Source of the DNA: Schizochytrium sp. TIO01
Taxonomy: Eukaryota > Protista > Bigyra: Labyrinthulomycetes
Length of the DNA stretch: 64,000 bases
Reading direction: 5' to 3'
Assembly (NCBI GenBank): GCA_004764695.1
Contig: SMSO01000033.1
Location: 1,860,001 to 1,924,000, forward strand
Of the stretch, positions 7,841-19,377 are shown piece after piece. The notes under the pieces were generated by a model that saw nothing but the letters and a program-made list of their open reading frames with translations, searched no databases and was not told the DNA's origin. The translations under genes were made by a program, and so were the position numbers. The stretch's first letter is position 1. Each line of letters starts with the position of its first letter.

Positions 7841-10551
7841 ATGATGCAGAGGGTTCCTGCCGAGAGTGGATGGATGGACGGTATAGAAGTGACAGGCGAG
7901 GCGGGGCGGGGCGCCATCTTGTTGGTTGGCGAACCTGGCGAAGAACGTGGCGGTCCACCGACGATGGGCTCCTTCTTATTTAGTATGACCCTATGCTACA
8001 AAATATGCAGAAATCAGTATTATGCCTACCCTTGGGATTTAGTCTATTGTTCCATAAGAATTAAGGGTTTAATTATTTCCTGAAAATGAAGGGGGGTTCA
8101 GTTGGCGCTGGTATGGGTTCACGATTTCACTTTGACCTCTTGAGAGAATCTCTAGCTCAAGTATTGGCGCTCTCTACGAGGTGTGCAGAAAAATGAGATC
8201 CCCGTTCGTGCTTCTGTGCACGGAGGCTTTCTGGTGGACAAGTATAACTACTGCCGCGGCGTGTTCTCCAACCCCAGTGAGCCTCAAGGATATCCACCTT
8301 CATTTCTACAAGTTACACTTTTTTTTCTTCTGATTTTCTAGATTTTAAACTTTAAATTAAATACCTAGTCCTAAGTTACTACTTTTATGTTTTAAAATGT
8401 TATATTTTATTTTATTTATAAAAATAAATAAAAACGTCTAAACTTGAAATTTTTATCTATAAAAAGGACAGGATATATATTCTCACAAAGACATTCCAGC
8501 TTATTGCCGATACGACCTTCCCGGGATTACTCCACGCAGCCTGCCCCCACGCTCAGCAGCTTTCTCGAGCGCGGAGACCCTATCTTTCCTCGACGGATCT
8601 CAAAAAAAAAAAAAGGCCTAGCTTTAAAATGAAGCATCCCGTTGTAGTACGTACAGATTCAAACCTCTACTTAAAAAAACTGCGAAACATGTAATCGAAA
8701 ATTGACTTCATAAGTTGTAATGATAATTTATTAGAAATCTGTCGCATGTAAAACAGCACATTACTGAACTGTTTTGTATCATACCTAACTTCAGTGTGGC
8801 AAATCAAGATCAATTTTCGAAACATATACGTGAATTTCACGAGTTTGAGACTCGCAAAACATTCTGAAAATGAATAAGATATACTGCTGATATACTATAA
8901 ATATTTTGTTCACATTCTTCTGCTTGTATTCGTGTGACTTTATCCATTTTTTTAAGGTCTTGTCATAGTTGCGCTACTTATGAAATCTACTTTACTACCC
9001 AATGCTCTCTTATAACGTAACTAAGGACCTTGGAGTCATCATTGGGCTACTGTTTAGACTGTTAAAATTGTCAGATGCTACTTTACAGATAGGTATAGCA
9101 GGATAATAAATAATCTCGTACATTACCTCTCATAGTGACATTCTCGATCAGTCTGACTTCACTCGTGCACATCTTATGCAATCTTTCACTACTTTTATTT
9201 TGGAATTCTATTTTACATGGTGCAAATCATTTATCGAACTCACGAACCACAAATATGTGGCTTTTTCCAAAACAACAACCATCAGTAATCAAATGTAAGT
9301 CTATAGTTGCTTAAACCCCCACCCACCTCAGCAGCAGAACCCTTTCAGCGCATATAAATTATGAATGTATTCTGTCTCGTTCGAAACTCAATCGCCTGTT
9401 ATTATACGATTAAACTTCCAAAACACATTCGATCAGGAAAATTATGAAGCTATTATGAGTGTTGAAATCAGCAGCTAGTCCAAAGCTAAAACTTCACATA
9501 TTTTAGATCAACCAAACAGACTAAAAGTATAATGAAATTGTACCCCAAAGTTGAGTTCGCTTAAATCCTCGGGAGCTGGCAGATAAACTCTTTGCTTCAA
9601 TCTCTCATCAGAACAGTAGTTGGTGCATATAGAAGCTCGGCTTTGCCTTTGTTTGCAAAAAGAAATGCTCTATAAAACAAGTCAAGATTATGACCGTTTT
9701 CAACCAAACAATATTTTGACAGGCATATTCAACTTATATATACAGTGACATTCTATCTATATCTCATCTATCTTCCACTATTATCATCTTTTGAATGCGC
9801 GCGTAATCCATTCAATAGAAGTATCAATACGCCTGGATTTTCGATCTGAAAGTTTTACAGATTTTAATACATCATCGGCATATAGAAACTTTGAATACAG
9901 TAAGAACGATGTGCCAGTATAGTCCTATATGCTAGCTAGCTACCTGTTCAACTAGTGCAGCACTTCCAAAGGTCTCTGTTCGACTTTTCAACCAGCAAGG
10001 CACTGGCAAACGACTTATCTCAAGACAAGCTCCGTTGGACAATTTAATCAATTCTGTCTATACAAAACCGGAATTACAATTATCCCCAAATTCATTGGGT
10101 TCAATACATTAAATTACCTGCAGAGTGAAGCATATTTTAAAAAATTACGACGATTCTGTAAAATTGCTACTAACTAACTAAGTAGTTGGTACCTAGCAGA
10201 TTTCTATATTCATTAATCATTTATAACTTTTCTTTCTTTAATTATATTTATTATTGGCCTGAAATAAATTAACTTGATACTTCGAGTTGACCAGGTCGAA
10301 TTCTAGAAAACGCCATCATGCTCCATGTCTGCTAAAGGTATCAAGGATATAAAAGAAAAGAGACTAACTAGACCTACTAGTAATACCTACATCCTGTCAC
10401 GTAGGTAAATTTTGCATAGAGGGATGTTTTTGTACAGTCTAACAAAAACCGTTAAAATTTCTATAACTTATATTTCGATGTGCTTGTTTCATATTAATCA
10501 TATATTATACTTAGTTAGATCTTTAATAAGAAGTGGAGGTTAGGTAAGAAA

Positions 10552-11250
10552 ATGGGGAGGCCGAGGAACCGACAAGCTCCAAACACTGCAAGTGGAGCAA
10601 ACCTCGAATACAAACCAGCAAAGTTCTTTCACCGGAAGTTTGGGGTCTCAGCAAGCGCCCTTCGGGGCTGGGCCGACGGCGGACGCGTGCGCTTCGCGCG
10701 CTTCCCCGGAGGCAAGCGCATCTATGCCAGCGACGATGTTGAGCGCATCTTTGATTGCGGTTCCACCGGCCGCGAGCAACGCAGCTCTGGATGTACCGTT
10801 ATCTACGCCAGAGTGTCCTCGGTCAAGCAAAAGGAGGACCTCGAACGCCAGGTTGGCGATCTCCAGCGCGCCTACCCAGATGCTTCCGCCGTCTACAAAG
10901 ACATCGGTAGCGGGGTCAATTTCAAACGCCAAGGTCTGTGCTCCCTACTGGACGCCTGTGACCGCGGCGGAATCGGCCAAGTTGTGGTCATGCACCGCTA
11001 CCGACTTGCGCGAATCGCAGTCGACCTCTTGGAACACCTTTTCGAAAGATAAAATGTCAAACTCGTGGTACACGGCCAAGATGCACATGCCGGAGACTCA
11101 GACACCTTCACCAAAGACCTCCTCGGAATCATCACCGTCTTTGTGGCATCGCATCACGGAAAACGAGCAGCGCAAAATAGACGGCGACGACGCAGCGAGG
11201 AAGAAGCGAGCTCGCACGAAGGCGCGCAAGACCACCAAGAAAGAATATGA
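10552..11250 (+). pseudogene. tnpA: IS607 TnpA serine recombinase with a premature in-frame stop
   Basis: HTH (FGVSASALRGWADGG...FPGGKRIY), catalytic VIYARVSS.KQKEDLERQ, and DIGSGVNFKRQGL. TAA at 11050-11052. The same frame continues NVKLVVHG...KDLLGIITVFVASHHGKR, the typical IS607 TnpA C-terminal helix, to TGA at 11250. The conserved DRLAR motif reads YRLAR. Confidence 0.9.
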
Positions 11251-12529
11251 CCTTGTCCGTGCCAGAAAGGTTAGGGTATACCCTACTAAAGATCAGCGTA
11301 CACAGTTGCTTAAATGGTTTGGTGTCACTAGAAGAGCCTACAATACTGGCGTTGCGTTTCACCGAGACATGGCGAAGGGCGAGGAAGAAGCCATCAAATT
11401 GCATCAAGAAGCGTGCATCAAAAAGGATCGTAAGACGAAGCAGGTTTTGGTAGATGAAGATGGGAATCCAAAAACACATCGGGCCCTTGGTGGAGAACTG
11501 AATGCCGTCCGATATAAAGAAAGACATGATCCTCCTAAATGGGTTGTCGAGGTCCCACAGGCTATCCGTGATTCCGGGATTCGGGATTTCTTCAAGGCTC
11601 TTAACTCGGGACGAGCCAAAAACGAAGAACTCGCTGCACAAAAGAAAGTTCACGAGCAATCTTTTTATAAGTTTCGGACCAAGCGTGACGAATCACAGAT
11701 TTTCGAAGTGAATGCACGTACCTGGAATGCGAAGAAATCAAAGACCTCCAACTTTCTAAAAGAATTCCGAATGCGTAAAGAAAAGTTCCCCGACCAGATT
11801 TCGAACGCCATGCGTGTGCAAATGAATCGCCTTGGGCATGTCTACTTCTGCTTCTTACGAGAAGAAAAAAAGCGTCCAATGGACCAGGCACCCAAGGGGC
11901 ACCATGGTGTCATTGCTCTAGACCCGGGTGTTCGCTCGTTTCAGACGATGTATGACGCCGATGGCCGCGCCATTGAATGGGGCACAGGGAAAGATTTTAG
12001 AACCATATTCTATCTCTGTCGCCGCGTTGATAAGATCCAAAGCAGCATTGATAAAAAGAAAACTGCATCCAGTGATAAAGACAATTTCAACACCCCCTTG
12101 AAGCGCGCCTTCTATCGCGCCCAACTCAAGATCAAGAACAAGATCACTGAGATTCACCGCAAGCTCGCGCTTTGGCTTTGTGAAAACTATCGTGTTATTC
12201 TCTTGCCTAAATTCGAAACCTCTAAGATGAGTAGGAGGATGGAGCGACGGATCTCCAAGAAGTCTGTTCGAATGATGTGTCGTTGGCGCCATTTTGGGTT
12301 CCGACAGGCTCTCATTCATAAGGCTGAGATGTTCCCGTGGTGCAAGCTTGTTCTTTGCCAAGAGAGCTACACTTCAAAAACATGCAATGAGTGCGGTACC
12401 CTCCACCATAACCTCGGGGCATCCAAGATTTTCCAATGCCCTAATCCCAAGTGCAACCATGTAGCAGACCGTGATGTCCATGCCGCAAGAGGCATCCTTT
12501 TACGCTACCTATCCAAGGACATGATTTAA
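10592..12529 (+). CDS. tnpB: Fanzor2 (eukaryotic TnpB-like RNA-guided RuvC nuclease); start uncertain (in-frame ATGs at 10724, 10880, 11054)
   Basis: RKVRVYPTKDQ...WFG..R..YN N-terminal motif. RuvC-I IALDPGVRSF (Asp 11921). The canonical RuvC-II Glu position holds Pro (ILLPKF), with a relocated Glu in QESYTSKTC (12362). Zn finger CNEC...CPNPKC. RuvC-III DRDVHAARGIL (Asp 12473). NSWY motif and basic NLS-like RKKRARTKARKTTKK. No internal stops. Confidence 0.93.
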   Translation: MEQTSNTNQQSSFTGSLGSQQAPFGAGPTADACASRASPEASASMPATMLSASLIAVPPAASNAALDVPLSTPECPRSSKRRTSNARLAISSAPTQMLPPSTKTSVAGSISNAKVCAPYWTPVTAAESAKLWSCTATDLRESQSTSWNTFSKDKMSNSWYTAKMHMPETQTPSPKTSSESSPSLWHRITENEQRKIDGDDAARKKRARTKARKTTKKEYDLVRARKVRVYPTKDQRTQLLKWFGVTRRAYNTGVAFHRDMAKGEEEAIKLHQEACIKKDRKTKQVLVDEDGNPKTHRALGGELNAVRYKERHDPPKWVVEVPQAIRDSGIRDFFKALNSGRAKNEELAAQKKVHEQSFYKFRTKRDESQIFEVNARTWNAKKSKTSNFLKEFRMRKEKFPDQISNAMRVQMNRLGHVYFCFLREEKKRPMDQAPKGHHGVIALDPGVRSFQTMYDADGRAIEWGTGKDFRTIFYLCRRVDKIQSSIDKKKTASSDKDNFNTPLKRAFYRAQLKIKNKITEIHRKLALWLCENYRVILLPKFETSKMSRRMERRISKKSVRMMCRWRHFGFRQALIHKAEMFPWCKLVLCQESYTSKTCNECGTLHHNLGASKIFQCPNPKCNHVADRDVHAARGILLRYLSKDMI

Positions 12530-12655
12530 AAAAATCATTTCATTGAGTCGCGGGTTAGTCTAACTAGCTCGTGATGGAGTCTAGCTCCTTCTATGAAATG
12601 CAAGTTTTGCAAATTTTATAGTAAAATCTAAGAGTCCAAATCGGAGATTTTATTC
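12530..12655 (+). ncRNA. Candidate omegaRNA (fRNA) scaffold at the element right end
   Basis: Nested stems begin just after the Fanzor stop. CATTTCAT (12536-43) pairs with ATGAAATG (12593-600). It encloses a 12-bp stem with three G-U pairs (12548-12574) and a GGAG/CTCC stem (12576-12588). A further stem is possible at 12621-28/12646-53. The position matches known TnpB/Fanzor guide scaffolds. Confidence 0.65.
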
Positions 12656-13753
12656 AACTGAAAACCTAGCAAACTATTACGAACTTTGAAAAGAAAGGAG
12701 GGCAGTAGCAATCTCAGACGGTTATCTACCTTCAGGACTTCGAGGATGAATTTTATGTTTTGTAGTTGACTTAGGAGTGAAGGAATCAGAAAGTTTTGGC
12801 TTTGCTTTGTTTATGGGGGCTGTCACACCTGACCCAGCAAACTCAGCCTCCAAGGATTGTATACTACTCTGTGTCCTGGATGTCATACGGGCAACCTAGC
12901 ACAGAATACCTAGTCGCTCTATCAACGTCGAATTCAAAGCTTACAATCCTGCACATTGATAATCTTGCTTGATCGTCTCGTGAATCCCTCCAGGTTGTTG
13001 GAATTGTCGGATTAGACTGTTGAACATTGAGCACAACCAATTATCTTCATTTGAGGCGTTAACATCTTATATCACTGAATATCCATTATCGCATCAGTAC
13101 CTTACTTCGTTTTTTGGTGAAGAATAAGCACGATCATAAACTGTCTAAGAGCAACCATTTGGGGTGTGTTCAATGAATTACTCTAAGCCAAACCAAAACG
13201 CTATGCAAGGCAAAAATGATGTTTTTCAGTATGATCACTCCACCTTGAGTTCCATTAAGAGTTATTTAGAACAAAAATTCTTGAAGATCATCGCCATCTA
13301 AAATATTAGATAAAATCGCTGTAATATTATTTCCAAAACACCATCGTGTGGCAGATGGCAGTTTATCAAGCTTGCATTCATAATAAATCAGGTATCATTT
13401 GTGGATATATCTGATATATTTGACGAGAGATGTAGTTACGACTCATCCTGAACCTATCATTCAAGTAAAGTTGATAGTAGTAAAACTTGTATCCTGATAT
13501 TTCAAATCAATTTACTAGCTTTTTGTCGAAGAAACATGACTCTCACGAATTCTGCTGTCGCTCAGTATAGAGGGTATGAATAATAGAATTATTTTAAATT
13601 GAATATTTGCTGACGCAGTCGTTTTTTTGTTCTGTTTGCTGTCTGTAGTTTTCTGTTTTTAAAATCCTGTATCAATTGCTCATCTCTCGCTTTTAAAATT
13701 CTAAGCTTACAGGTTTAAGATTGATCAATCAAGCCTAGCAATATTTTTGGCTT

Positions 13754-14178
13754 TGTAGAATATCCAATGGAAGCAATTAATTGACAAGACATTGCTAGCG
13801 TTATAGGCATCCCTTTGTAAGAAACTATGAATATAAGATTTACAATAGAATAGAACTAGACAATCAGACTCGCCTGGATTAGGAGTCGAGAACCGAAAGT
13901 GCGCATACTTTAATACTAGAACCATTGTTGGAACTTGATGGAACCTGAATTGATAGTGAAAGATGCAAGTTAACCTGACCCCATCAAAAGTGTCTTATGC
14001 AGTTCAAGTATGGCTTACTCCCCTAATTACAACATAAAGCAGTCTGCGTTGGAAGTAGATTCCAAGGACAGCAGTTCTTTTACTCTTAAAATCCTAAAGT
14101 ATCATGCCTTCTTATACACCCTTAGAGCATTCATCAAGCCTCTTGCCTTCATCTCCATAGTTATTGAAGTAATATACA
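13754..14178 (+). repeat. Diverged solo-LTR-like copy, inverted relative to the adjacent copia LTR
   Basis: Starts TGTA and ends TACA. Colinear imperfect match to the reverse complement of 14184-14599, e.g. gacaagacattgctag vs gacaagatattgctag, taacctgaccccatc vs taacctaaccccatc, ggacagcagttc. No PPT upstream or PBS downstream. Confidence 0.65.
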
Positions 14179-14645: not shown

Positions 14646-17600
14646 TCATACATGATCGATGCGAGGCAGTGACTTGGTGAGACAATCGGAGGGGTTCAAT
14701 GTGCCAGGGATATGTGTGATTCGAATGTCACCTGCGTTCAGCTTGATTGACAGATCAAGGTACTTCAATAATAGGTGCTTGTTTCGTGATTGCAAACAAC
14801 CCTGCTCCACTACATTTATTACTGCTTGAGAGTCGGTGAAAATATCAATGCAACTGATGTTGATCCCGAATTCTTCTAGTAAATGTCGGACACCTTCCGC
14901 AGCACGACTAGCTTCGTAGATGCTAATGAGTTCTGCTTCAAAGGTGCTTTGGGCTGTGATAGTCTGTTTGGTTGATTTCCATAACACAGCACTATCATTG
15001 AGTCTTACTACGTATCCACTTACCGATTTCATGTGTGGGTCGTTGATTTGACCAAAGCTTGCATCAGCAAATACATTAATCTTGATATCCTTCACTGAGC
15101 TCTGTCCTTTTAGCACAAGACCATCATTTGTGGTTCCTCTAAGATATCTGAGGGTCCTCTTACATGCGTCCATGTGTACTGGTCCATTCTTGTGTCCGTG
15201 TCTAGATAGTTGGTGAAGTGGGTATCCAAGGTCGATTCGTGTGCAACTGAGGTACATGAGCTTTCCCACAATTGTTCGGTAGTCTGGGTGTTGTTCATCT
15301 TTATCATGGTCAGGAAGATAGCACTTAGCCTCCATTGGTGTTTTACATGAGTTAGCTTTGTCCATCCCGTGATCCTTTAATTTCTTTTCTATATGGACTG
15401 CCTGGGAAATCTTGCATGTTTTTGCATCCAGGTTGAACTCATGTTTGTTACCTAAGTAAGTGGCAGTGGCTGGGTTTATCTCACACTTGACGTCATACTT
15501 TGCTTTTAGAGTGTTGATTGTTTTCTTCACTGAATTCGGAGTTCCTGTGATTAATAGGTCGTCCACATGACTGATGACAATGGCTTCGAGTCCGATAAAG
15601 CAACTTGGGTCGAACTTGCTTTTCCGAAGTCCACAACCTTCTAGGGTTTGGGCTAGGTGTTCAGCCCACCTTCGAGGACTTGTTTTCAGTCCATAGAGGG
15701 ATCTACGAGGACTTGTTTTCAGTCCATAGAGGGATCTAGCAAGTTTGAAGATGCATCCTTCTGGTACTTGTACACCTCTCGGTGGTCGGATGTAGATGGG
15801 TTCCTTTTCATGATCGATTTCTGCTTGTAAGAATGCAGCCGATACATCCAATATCGCGAATGACTAGTTCTTAGTGAGAGCAACAATAATGGCTGTTCTC
15901 AGCGATAATCTGTCCGTGGTTGGGGCGAAAACATCCCACGGAGATGTTAGGGGTTCATTAGTCCCTTGAGCAACTAGCCTGGCCTTGGCGGTTTGCTGAG
16001 GTGTTTTGTATGTGAAAATCCATGCGGCATTGATGATAGTGCCTTTTGCATCCTGTTTGGGTACAATGAGGAAGGTCCCACTCCTTTCAAGATTAGACCA
16101 CTCTTTTCTTATCGCCTCAGTCCATATTTGACGTTCCTGGTATGGTAAACGTAGATAGTCACTGAAGTTTCGAGGCGCGACAATGAGTTTTGATTGTTGG
16201 TCCTGTTTTACTGTTGGTTCAATTCCAACCCGTGTGGATTGAGACTTCTTCTTCTTTGATGGGCTATGCATTTCATGTATTGCAGAGGGACTGTTACAGT
16301 GATCATAACGTGTCCGTTTCTGTAGTGCTTTTGTCCCATCATAGACTTGTGATACCTGCTCCCCCGGGACAAAGGACGGGGAATGGTCAAAAGAAGATGC
16401 CTGTAAAACATGAGAGGGATAGCGATAGGTATTGGCCCTCCCCAGGGCAGCCGCGTCCGCATTTATCCATTGGGTGCGGCGGGAAATTCGTCCACTCCTG
16501 GTCCGTACCTCTGTATTGGGTACGGGCTCCTTGGGATCCTCATCGGGATTCGACCAAGGTGGAGAGTTTGATTCAGACTCCGCATTATCATGTGGAGGAA
16601 TAGACATACGGTCTAGGTTGGATTCAATGTTAGTTGAATCAGCTACATCAGAACTAGTATGTGATGAGCTCGTATTCGCCGGAGAAGTCTCACTTCTATG
16701 GGAGAGTTCTGGCAAAGATAGATTATCGTGAGTCTCCGATAGGTCACAGGACGCTATCCCATCCTGTCGGTGCTCACCCTGACCAGCGTTTGCCTGTCTT
16801 TGAGATTGGGACAGGTCATGCTCGAAATCAGGTTGTATCAAGTCCTGTAGATTTCTAACCCTGCTCGGGTGATCAGGTCGAGATGTCGACAGTATGCGAC
16901 TGGGTGAATCCACGGAGAGGGCATCGTTGTCACACAGCCTGTTAGAGCTGGACGCAGATCCTAAATTGGGAGATGACGCTACCAGTGGGTCGTTTGGACC
17001 TGAGCTGGAAGCGGTCATTGAGGACAAGGAGGAGGAGTTCGACTAGTTAAGGTCACACATCGTAGGAAAGTAGAAGGATTTGAACCGGAGAGATGAGTCT
17101 TTTCTCGAACCGGAGCGTAGATGCTCCCCCATTGTTTTAGGACCTCCTTGTTCCACGGTGTTTTGATTGTTGGTGAACCGTGGGAAGGAGTTCATGACCC
17201 TGTCGACAATGGAATTCTCGAAGAACCGTACATCCCGTGTAGTGATGAGATGTGTAGTGCGGTTGTTCAGGATGAGATATGTAGAGTGGTTGTGATGTCG
17301 TGCCACACCCAGGAACTTGCCACTTAAACCGCGTGGAGCGAGCTTGTTTGGTGGAGCCTGGTCTTTAAACACAACGTCACAACCAAATATATGGAGGTTG
17401 TCTAGAGACGGCGAACGACCATAGTGAATCTCAAAGGGAGATTGTGTGGAACGTTGGGATGGAAGTCTGTTACGAATGTAACAAGCGTATTCATACGCAA
17501 AATACCAACAGCGAGAGGGAAGTTCAGCCGCCATAAGCATGGCTCTAGCCATCCGAAGGAGAACCCCATTCAAGGATTCAGCTGGGTGAAGAGCATGAGC

Positions 17601-19377
17601 CCCGCTGGGACTAATTGAAAGACTCCATCCCCATTGTGTGCAAGTTTCCTTGAATGTGCCACCAACGAAATAGGAAGCTCCATCAACATATAGTCGTGCT
17701 CGTCACTTCAAAACCATGCCAGTCTGCCCTCCATTGGTGAAGAGCAGTCGTGACTTGAGTGAGAGATTTTAATCCATAGCATTGTGCGATGCCAGAAACT
17801 AGATCCCGAATCACTAAGGCATGCTTGTAGCCATGTAGGAAGGAGGATTGAAATGGGCCAACGACGTCTAATGTAGCAGCCTGGCGAGGTGCGGTTGCTC
17901 GTGACTCGTGTGGGCCTTGAGGGACAGGTCTGGTTTTGATGTTGGCTAAAGCACAGGTCGGACACGAAAACTGTATTTTGGACGGAGGGACTTGGAGAAC
18001 ACGAGCCATACGAGTGATGTTGGGATGGCCTAATCGCAGGTGAGCGGCAAGCCAATCTCTCTGACGATTAGAGGAGACGGCCAACAATGCATGAGAAGGA
18101 GCTAGTCACTCTTGACGTATGCATGGTGAGCCATGATAGTCGCCGAGAATGACGGTATCTCCCCTTGGAGTAGAGAGCTCTCATCGTTGTGGTCCCAATG
18201 AGACCACAAAGTTGCGATCCGTGAGGTCGCGAACCGCAACGAGAGTGGGTGCTGGAGAGGGAACATAGTCTGCATCGATGGTTACAGTGATGGTTTTCCC
18301 TTTTGTGTTTTTCATTTTAACTTGAATTTGTCCTACTTGGGTGATATCCATGGTTTCACCGTTTGCAACCGTGATCCGTCGAGGTGCAGGAAGTTGTTCC
18401 AGGGATTGGAATAGGTTGCGATCACCGGTCATTGTTTTGGAACAGCCGCTGTCTAAGAGAATGACATCAGACGGAATAGACTGTGACAGGGCCATAAAGG
18501 AGAATAAGCCTGTCGAAGGATGAGTGGCGTGATTGAAATACGCCAAGTTCGGATCCAAATGCGAGTGTGTTTGAGGAGTCTGTAAGTTGCGTTTGGCTCG
18601 TTTTGAGCGTGTGTGAGATCGAGAATGTGACTGTTGTTGTTGGGCGGAGTTAGGTGTCGCTCTGCAATCGCGCCCATAGTGGCCGCGACGACCACAGTTG
18701 GCACAAGTAATGTGCTGATGGAACTTGGATTGTCTGGGATTCTTGGAGGTTTTGGAGACAGCCACTAACGCCCAGGGATCAGTGGTAGTTGGAGCATTTA
18801 TTTTTGGTTTATGTGGGTGATTGGCTACCGCCCTTTGAATAGTATGAATGGCTTTGGTGATCTGGAGTTGAGGTTCAAGTACTTCATTGATAGCTACCTC
18901 GTACTTACCTCCAGTGACTTCATGGAAGCGCATCAGACTAAGCAGTGTAACTAGTTCGAGTGGGTCAGTGTTGAGTGCAACTAGTTGTTCGCCTATGTTG
19001 ATGATTTGATAGAAAAATCCATTGCATACTTCAAAACTCTCGCCAGCTGTAGAGACAATTGCAGAACGGAGTAGCTTTTCCATTCGTTGAAGTATCTGCA
19101 CTTTACCTCGTGCACTTGATTCTGCAAACAGTTCATTGAGACGGTGCCACGCATGGATACCAGACTTGTGTGGGTTCGAGGCGGTGATAATATATAGCTT
19201 GTCTTGAGCATTTTCAGCTGCCTGAGTCAGGATCTGGTACAACTTCTGATCTCGGTCATACCAGATTTCTGGGGTGGGTGCATTGGCTATGTTCTCGGGT
19301 GTGAGACCATAGGTGCTGAGAAAATTGAAGAGTTTGACTCTATACTGATCCCAGGTTCCCTTCATGTCATCTGACAT
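14646..19377 (-). pseudogene. Copia gag-pol polyprotein with several in-frame stops and one frameshift
   Basis: Zn knuckle CANCGRRGHYGRDC; protease LLDSGCS; pre-integrase HLRLGH...CPTC; integrase LDVVGP, DG, PAES; RT KARLVAQG, DVSAAFLQ, SLYGLK, HVDDLL; RNase H FADASF, EAE, FTDSQ, NPSDCLTK. Stops at 18181, ~18107, 17043 and 15864; frameshift near 17685. Confidence 0.95.

Follow-up and report, generated by a model that had tools for sequence, protein, structure and literature searches.

Fanzors have been shown to cleave DNA in vitro as well as inside human cells. Which role they have for their transposons in natural eukaryotic hosts is a question that the family of elements described here could address. 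We analysed a 64,000-nt stretch of the genome of the protist Schizochytrium sp. TIO01 (contig SMSO01000033.1), hereafter called the window; all coordinates are positions in it. An initial annotation had placed in it an IS607-Fanzor2 locus, in which a gene for a candidate RNA-guided nuclease lies next to a gene for a serine recombinase, tnpA. What is this locus, and could it still be active? In our judgement, 10435–12634 is very probably one copy of a young IS607-type DNA transposon that carries a Fanzor2 gene and resides in protist chromosomes. The family offers at least nine copies with both genes, about 15 with an intact nuclease, purifying selection, transcription and at least one strain-variable insertion. 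The kind of system is already known. The value of this new member lies in an apparently living Fanzor2-IS607 family in a protist, together with one allele that possibly records nuclease action. The principal features are:

10435–12634, plus strand: complete IS607-type element of about 2.2 kb; the near-full young copies number at least 17
10552–11250, plus strand: tnpA, IS607 serine recombinase, frame 1, 232 aa in intact copies, interrupted here by TAA at 11050–11052
10724–12529, plus strand: intronless Fanzor2 gene, 601 aa and a stop codon
11921–12475, plus strand: split RuvC site and C4 zinc finger

Fanzor2 gene, active site and fold

Frame 2 is free of stops from 10592 to 12529 (645 codons). 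The first ATG of this open frame, at 10724, gives a protein of 601 aa, and the next usable one, at 11081, gives 482 aa. For the window copy, the 601-aa form is the most likely protein, and for most copies it is one of 617–618 aa. The size of about 490–600 aa given earlier agrees with this at its upper end, while the value of about 490 aa was not retained. In a profile search, the 482-aa part matched NF040570 (guided_TnpB, 4e-25), PF07282 (1e-13) and PF12323 (1e-9) in its C-terminal 420 residues.

The active site is complete (482-aa numbering, 601-aa form in brackets). The RuvC-I aspartate is D281 (D400) in ALDPGV, with its codon at 11921. The canonical RuvC-II position is occupied by Pro376 in ILLPKFE (codon at 12206), and the relocated glutamate is E428 (E547) in CQESYTSKTC (codon at 12362). 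It is followed by the zinc finger C435/C438/C453/C458 (nt 12383–12454, CxxC...CxxxxC) and by the RuvC-III aspartate D465 (D584) in ADRD (codon at 12473). The initial annotation had described a stop-free open reading frame (ORF) with three RuvC acidic residues and a complete C4 finger, with Pro/Gly at the canonical RuvC-II position and the glutamate moved to ExYTSKTC, and all of this was found. The triad and the four zinc-finger cysteines were invariant in 17 relatives, as was L-D-x-G at RuvC-I (alignment A1). Moreover, D400/E547/D584 pair one-to-one with D324/E467/D501 of ApmFz2, the experimental catalytic triad of that enzyme (PMC11832414). The DPG motif and a glutamate displaced towards the C terminus are Fanzor signatures of Yoon et al. 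(bioRxiv 2023.08.09.552727), and the Fanzor motif has been written as D-x(125,275)-[TS][TS]-x-x-C4-x(5,50)-RD (PMC3627910).

The best solved relative by sequence was mimivirus L79, which is ApmFz2 (9b0l, E 1e-19), followed by Cas12f at about 1e-6. For the fold we compared an AlphaFold model of the 601-aa ORF, with a mean predicted local distance difference test score (pLDDT) of 69.6. The best match was again ApmFz2 (Foldseek E 1e-15; VIA-align Z 20.2, 422/466 residues aligned, N-terminal domain included). The assignment as an IS607-linked Fanzor2 in a eukaryotic chromosome, made in the initial annotation, is supported by the sequence comparison and by the predicted fold.

Fanzor2 proteins have a structured N-terminal domain, composed of RuvC-R and a basic thumb, which is absent from TnpB (Schargel et al.). 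Residues 72–601 of the model pair with residues 53–518 of 9b0l, whereas ISDra2 TnpB pairs only from residue ~175. Since the pairing begins at ApmFz2 residue 53, where the N-terminal domain of ApmFz2 starts, the Fanzor2-specific domain would be present in the window protein as well. The evidence for it is moderate, as parts of the domain are modelled at pLDDT <50. When the N-terminal 189 aa were compared by themselves, no solved structure matched them in sequence, and the link to ApmFz2 here comes from the fold alignment only. Two features belong to this region:

10937–11248, plus strand: predicted Fanzor2 N-terminal domain, residues 72–175 of the 601-aa form, overlapping the 3' half of tnpA in the +1 frame
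11189–11254, plus strand: basic patch DAARKKRARTKARKTTKK, aligned by HMMER to 9b0l residues 117–166

The thumb of ApmFz2 comprises residues 109–130 (PMC11832414). The basic patch had been read as resembling a nuclear localisation signal (NLS). The patch is indeed there, but it aligns with the thumb, and it would be the counterpart of the DNA-clasping thumb of ApmFz2 rather than of its NLS.

Copies, selection and transcription

The genome (64 Mb, 37 contigs) contains at least 59 DNA matches to the element. At least 17 of them are near-full copies, 94–98% identical to the window copy and located on ten contigs (including C4, C5, C13 and C31–C36); older copies with 66–90% identity are also present. 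Genome-wide there are 16 open TnpB-type frames of 615–682 codons. Of the 17 young copies, 15 have kept the Fanzor ORF intact, 10 encode the full 232-aa TnpA and nine have both. When differences from the family consensus were counted, the ratio of non-synonymous to synonymous differences (pN/pS) was 0.27 in the Fanzor-only part, compared with 0.81 and 1.29 in two control frames. The Fanzor-only part is under purifying selection.

Two transcriptome ORFs, P0151 (601 aa) and P0260 (617 aa), are 96% identical to the window protein and colinear with the DNA. This means that the gene is intronless and that the family is transcribed. Contig depth was left aside as a measure of expression, even for run X6, where that of the element is very high, since contigs cannot show levels.

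The insertion in the window is spanned on both sides by contigs of the independent run X1 (9300–10492 and 12593–13800) at single-copy depth, and a contig of another run, X9, passes from one flank to the other. The insertion is therefore real and polymorphic. Signs of recent mobility are the 94–98% identical copies at different sites, a tnpA-disrupted subfamily at no fewer than five sites and the presence/absence polymorphism at this locus. Support for the proposal that the system is potentially active is indirect; it comes from the purifying selection, the copies that are still intact, the transcripts and the polymorphic insertion.

At L005:1000–1500 and L009:3710–5019, a young copy abuts, in head-to-head orientation, the left-end region of an old diverged copy of this kind of element, and there could be a preference for inserting beside resident element ends. 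Among the retrieved copy loci we found no paralogous empty sites, only these two young copies abutting old ones.

The recombinase gene and the nested nuclease frame

The first 166 aa of the tnpA product matched NF033518 (3e-30) and the Resolvase domain PF00239 (2e-14), and its C-terminal piece matched the end of the same model. TnpA contains a MerR_1/HTH_17 domain (residues 28–66), the Resolvase domain (83–162) and the RVSS motif. The IS607 serine recombinase reported next to the nuclease is hence present, but in the window copy its gene carries the in-frame TAA at 11050–11052. Because of this premature stop, it scored 105 bits against a cut-off of 110. After the TAA, tnpA resumes up to 11250 with the C-terminal motif of the family. 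Other copies have AAA or CAA in this column. Since tnpA is broken, mobilisation of the window copy would need the recombinase of other copies, and the window copy depends on the nine or more copies with both genes. It is non-autonomous for movement, yet its nuclease gene and 3' RNA region are complete.

The identical TAA also occurs in L003, L008 and L015–L017, which come from different sublineages, as their left-end and 3' variants differ. Such recurrence suggests gene conversion between copies or a repeated A-to-T change in an A-run. In one subfamily, tnpA is disrupted by a 294-bp dispersed repeat (L015:1207–1500, also in L016, L017, L020 and L030; insertion point equivalent to window 10633/10634). 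This repeat has at least 40 copies in the genome and contains (CTAAC)5. We considered an intron as the cause of the tnpA stop or of the 294-bp insert and rejected it: neither is bordered by GT...AG, and the insert is a dispersed repeat. As the disrupted subfamily reached at least five sites, it was moved by the recombinase of other copies.

The two genes share much of their sequence. For its first ~175 residues the nuclease is read from tnpA in the +1 frame, and the Fanzor frame meets no stop over almost all of the recombinase gene (10592–11250). At about 40 related metagenome loci with both genes (among L032–L099), the nuclease was without exception in the +1 frame relative to tnpA. The overlap between its open frame and tnpA is 335–905 nt there, and this frame often begins within ~10 nt of the tnpA start. 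Over the tnpA region, 18 of 29 non-redundant loci had no stop in the +1 frame; the +2 frame had 1–25 stops. Synonymous-codon shuffles gave p ≤0.005 for several loci, the window family included. Identity at tnpA third positions rises from 0.34–0.37 (codons 20–80) to 0.51–0.54 (codons 140–200), compared with 0.32 in the Fanzor-only part. The third positions of tnpA are constrained over the Fanzor2 N-terminal domain. Four relatives without tnpA retain the N-terminal motif PFW...LW.(P/C)T...SW(F/Y)T, and the motif therefore belongs to the nuclease.

In the Fanzor and IS607 literature that we consulted, there was no mention of this overlap. In the one canonical bacterial IS607 element that we examined (L130), tnpB overlaps tnpA by 8 nt, in contrast to ~530–700 nt in the window element. 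The N-terminal domain contacts RNA and DNA in the solved mimivirus enzyme (PMC11832414). A Fanzor2 N-terminal domain written in the +1 frame of a recombinase bears on the origin of the domain and on how two proteins are obtained from one eukaryotic transcript. On the plus strand, no further ATG lies between that of tnpA (10552) and that of Fanzor (10724). This order would suit leaky scanning for the Fanzor start; an internal promoter or a +1 frameshift are the alternatives. A short upstream ORF in the left end of the element (10478–10543, frame 2, ATG at 10478) ends with a TAG just before the tnpA ATG and would be relevant only with transcripts that start upstream of it.

Ends of the element and the candidate guide RNA

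The limits of the element were set where identity begins (10435, CAG...) and ends (12634, ...CTAAGAG) in an alignment with 20 other copies from the same genome. Outside these limits the flanks are unrelated between copies, and a target-site duplication is absent (18 copies compared). The initial annotation had ended the locus at 12655; the element is there, but its right end is at 12634 and the remaining 21 nt are flank. The following features mark the ends:

10435–10437, plus strand: left tip CAG, candidate target-adjacent motif (TAM), with AG as candidate crossover dinucleotide in common with the right end ...GAG
10453–10476, plus strand: 24-nt left arm of the subterminal inverted repeat, 79% complementary to 12595–12618, candidate binding site for the recombinase
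12595–12618, plus strand: right subterminal inverted-repeat arm
12430–12634, plus strand: candidate omega-RNA scaffold, which takes in the end of the ORF and reaches the right end of the element

The arms lie 18 nt (left) and 16 nt (right) inside the element ends. Long terminal inverted repeats are absent, and this 24-nt repeat is the only one. The left junction reads CAG in 15 of 18 copies and the right end reads GAG in all 18. In the bacterial element ISXfa1 the TAM is GGG and the right end CGG (bioRxiv 2023.08.09.552727). Because of this analogy we propose, tentatively and short of calling it probable, that AG is the crossover dinucleotide and CAG the TAM, and that GAG at the right end would protect the occupied site. 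The crossover at the AG of both junctions is what we infer from this arrangement. If so, the family would provide a compact nuclease (~600 aa) with a probable 3-nt CAG motif.

The 3' end may be the source of a guide RNA. The last ~200 nt fold with a z-score of -4.1 against shuffles; the 5' limit of the candidate scaffold, 12430, was set by analogy with the 205-nt scaffold of ApmFz2. Three hairpins (12547–12575, 12576–12588 and 12591–12621) lie in the ~105-nt 3' untranslated part, and they are retained in young copies and in old copies of ~67% identity. They show compensatory changes, such as GGAG/CUCC, CGGG/CCUG, GGGG/CCCC and GGGC/GCCC in the middle hairpin. RNAalifold on 17 copies gave a weak consensus with two compensatory pairs; since MAFFT misaligns the variable middle hairpin, the case for the hairpins was built on per-copy folds. 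An Rfam search of 10300–12800 at E up to 10 found no family save chance lncRNA matches. As far as the sequence tells, the 3' end fits an omega-RNA scaffold that ends at the right end and takes its guide from the flank.

An allele without the element

The 3,082-nt contig of run X9 runs from 10434 through a single A to 12656. It lacks 10435–12655, that is, the CAG, the element and the 21-nt flank:

12635–12655, plus strand: the 21 nt of flank that adjoin the right end, candidate target matched by the guide, absent from the X9 allele

Fanzor2 uses a TAM of 3 nt, and ApmFz2 was studied with a 21-nt guide (PMC11832414). For ApmFNuc, the cuts on the target strand fall at positions 15, 18 and 21. The X9 allele could then be a scar: excision would have restored the CAG and the 21-nt target, the nuclease would have cut there, and end joining would have left one A in place of 24 nt. 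We consider this possible but doubtful. Should this reading hold for further loci, a trace of Fanzor action inside a eukaryotic host would be on record for the first time, and the TAM (CAG) and the guide length (21 nt) could be read without experiment.

The alternative is that X9 carries the ancestral empty site and that the element arrived together with the CAG and 21 nt of carried-over flank or filler, in which case the allele would be uninformative on the nuclease. This reading has a considerable chance of being right, although we would not call it probable. In its favour, there is one locus only, and the junction of the empty allele has neither AG nor CAG. We also searched for the 21-mer as a possible donor elsewhere and found none in the assembly at up to two mismatches, which fits filler or a lost donor. 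The flanks point the other way. Among the differences listed, X1, which has the insertion, has ~14 private ones, X9 has two and the window ~7. Assuming no recombination, the simplest history is that the insertion predates the split and that X9 lost the element. In addition, a serine recombinase has no known route to carry 21 nt past the right end, and the distal boundary of the 21 nt is without AG.

Working model and its alternatives

In the model that we favour, the element would leave and enter its sites through TnpA-driven recombination at a short core, which to judge by the sequence is the AG of CAG and GAG, and no target-site duplication would be left. Fanzor2, together with an RNA made of the last ~200 nt plus ~21 nt of flank, would recognise and cut the vacated site, consisting of a 3-nt motif (probably CAG) and then the flank. 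The element would be copied back from the sister or homologous chromosome and would hence be retained.

Several points weigh against this model. RNA binding, the TAM, cleavage and homing of the window Fanzor2 are what we infer, and for RNA binding and cleavage this counts against it. The RNA runs consist of contigs, which cannot show RNA ends. The quick maximum-likelihood tree was made without curated Fanzor1, Fanzor2 and TnpB reference sets; in it the window protein and a dinoflagellate protein share a 20-member clade (SH-aLRT 98), separate from phage-like, metagenome-assembled genome (MAG) and giant-virus clades. The empty allele of run X9 has no CAG motif, so the assignment of TAM and core leans on analogy plus the scar reading. 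The 1–7 nt after the CAG are hypervariable among copies that are otherwise 95–98% identical, which is not predicted by a clean serine-recombinase mechanism. In window 10438–10444 and the counterparts in L002–L021 we found TATG, TCTA, GTATA, AAGA, TTCGATG, TAGGG and others, with sequence and length both varying. Finally, tnpA is truncated, and the usual start ATG of the family (window-equivalent 10676, protein MADACA...) is mutated to ACG in the window copy, which may be in early decay.

The last point can be taken further: the family is or was active, and the window copy is an early-decay relic that makes no useful protein. Besides the TAA in tnpA and the ACG where most copies have ATG, this is compatible with the 2–6% divergence from relatives, in which case the open Fanzor frame would simply reflect youth. 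Exact RNA-library contigs (run X17) are short and could stem from identical stretches elsewhere, or from DNA. Yet the window copy retains the ATG at 10724, upstream of the conserved N-terminal domain, and the resulting 601 aa are the length of the transcript ORF P0151; L005 and L015–L017 share that start. The catalytic residues are all intact. We regard a relic as unlikely.

The protein could also have been domesticated or repurposed, for instance as an RNA-guided DNA binder or regulator, instead of serving its transposon as a nuclease. TnpB relatives have reportedly been repurposed as RNA-guided transcription factors in bacteria, and purifying selection alone does not reveal function. On the other hand, the triad and the zinc finger are invariant, and the gene always lies within a mobile multi-copy element with its own ends and is never a single conserved host gene. 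This makes repurposing very improbable.

A bacterial or viral contaminant or a misassembly, which might be suspected since TnpB and IS607 are typically prokaryotic and since a 46%-identical element on a 2.1-kb contig is filed under a Hydrogenophaga MAG, has practically no chance of being the explanation: copies sit on ten contigs with unique eukaryotic flanks and similar GC, both junctions are spanned by contigs of independent runs at single-copy depth, a strain without the insertion exists, and ordinary bacterial TnpBs are far more distant.

Relation to known systems

The closest described system is ApmFz2, also called ApmFNuc (mimivirus L79, PDB 9B0L; PMC11832414, PMC10530073). It has in common with the window protein the DPG motif, a Pro/Gly-type canonical RuvC-II position, the glutamate just before the zinc finger, the C4 finger, the N-terminal domain that TnpB lacks, the linkage to a TnpA of IS607 type and a 3' RNA region that is structured. 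Over the structural alignment the two proteins are ~19% identical. ApmFz2 belongs to a giant virus with three copies, whereas the window family has ~20 copies in a cellular eukaryote. The TAM is GGG in ApmFz2 and, by analogy, likely CAG in the window family. The second zinc-finger pair is CxxC in ApmFz2 and CxxxxC in the window protein, which also has a longer N-terminal extension with an extra conserved motif, PFW...LWSCTATDL.

Bacterial IS607 elements (ISXfa1 and H. pylori IS607; bioRxiv 2023.08.09.552727) share with the window element the order of tnpA and then tnpB on the same strand and the absence of a target-site duplication. They have a core dinucleotide common to ends and target, and a TAM one base off the right end (GGG/CGG), to be compared with CAG/GAG in the window. 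Ordinary bacterial TnpBs reached E ~1e-7 at best to the window protein in 400 sampled Pseudomonadota genomes.

Other eukaryotic Fanzor2 elements, the published ones compared with the window protein by their descriptions, are likewise IS607-linked, multi-copy, intronless and of TnpB-like size (Phytophthora and Acanthamoeba, Bao & Jurka 2013, PMC3627910; molluscan MmFNuc, DpFNuc and BaFNuc, PMC10530073; Durusdinium P0165). The dinoflagellate (Durusdinium) protein P0165 is the nearest named relative, with 46% identity and a place in the same well-supported clade of the quick tree. No labyrinthulomycete host for Fanzor or IS607 was named in the literature that we found. Fanzor1 (SpuFz1, PDB 8GKH) is also a eukaryotic TnpB-derived RNA-guided nuclease with a shifted glutamate, but it was a poor structural match to the window protein (Foldseek E 1.5e-4, template modelling score 0.30). 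Fanzor1 elements belong to other transposon superfamilies and usually have introns, in contrast to the intronless and IS607-linked window gene.

An acquisition via a giant virus, suggested earlier as a possibility, found no support. The first of two viral-contig scans found none, and the second found one giant-virus MAG contig as the sole such relative, with 31% identity and without tnpA. A bacterial-genome scan with the single protein gave one match, the element under the Hydrogenophaga MAG mentioned above; its 2.1-kb contig has exactly the size of the element, is probably mis-binned and may be eukaryotic or viral DNA.

Elements of 35–46% identity with the same nested layout lie on short contigs filed under bacterial MAGs (L032/L114, G001:C121, 2,116 bp; L115, L120, L123 and L128 in G063). 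A more distant relative (L066) was found on a 74-kb phage-like contig with a tail-fibre gene.

Surroundings in the window

The neighbours of the element are eukaryotic: a copia-type RVT_2, an Hsp70/110-type gene, an AP-complex mu subunit and a GT90 gene. This agrees with the earlier description of a locus set among eukaryotic genes and a copia element. The GC content of the element resembles that of its surroundings. The copia-type retroelement (14646–19377, minus strand) lies 2 kb downstream of the element; its domains are RVT_2 and a Pol beta-barrel, and its pol is distributed over several frames.

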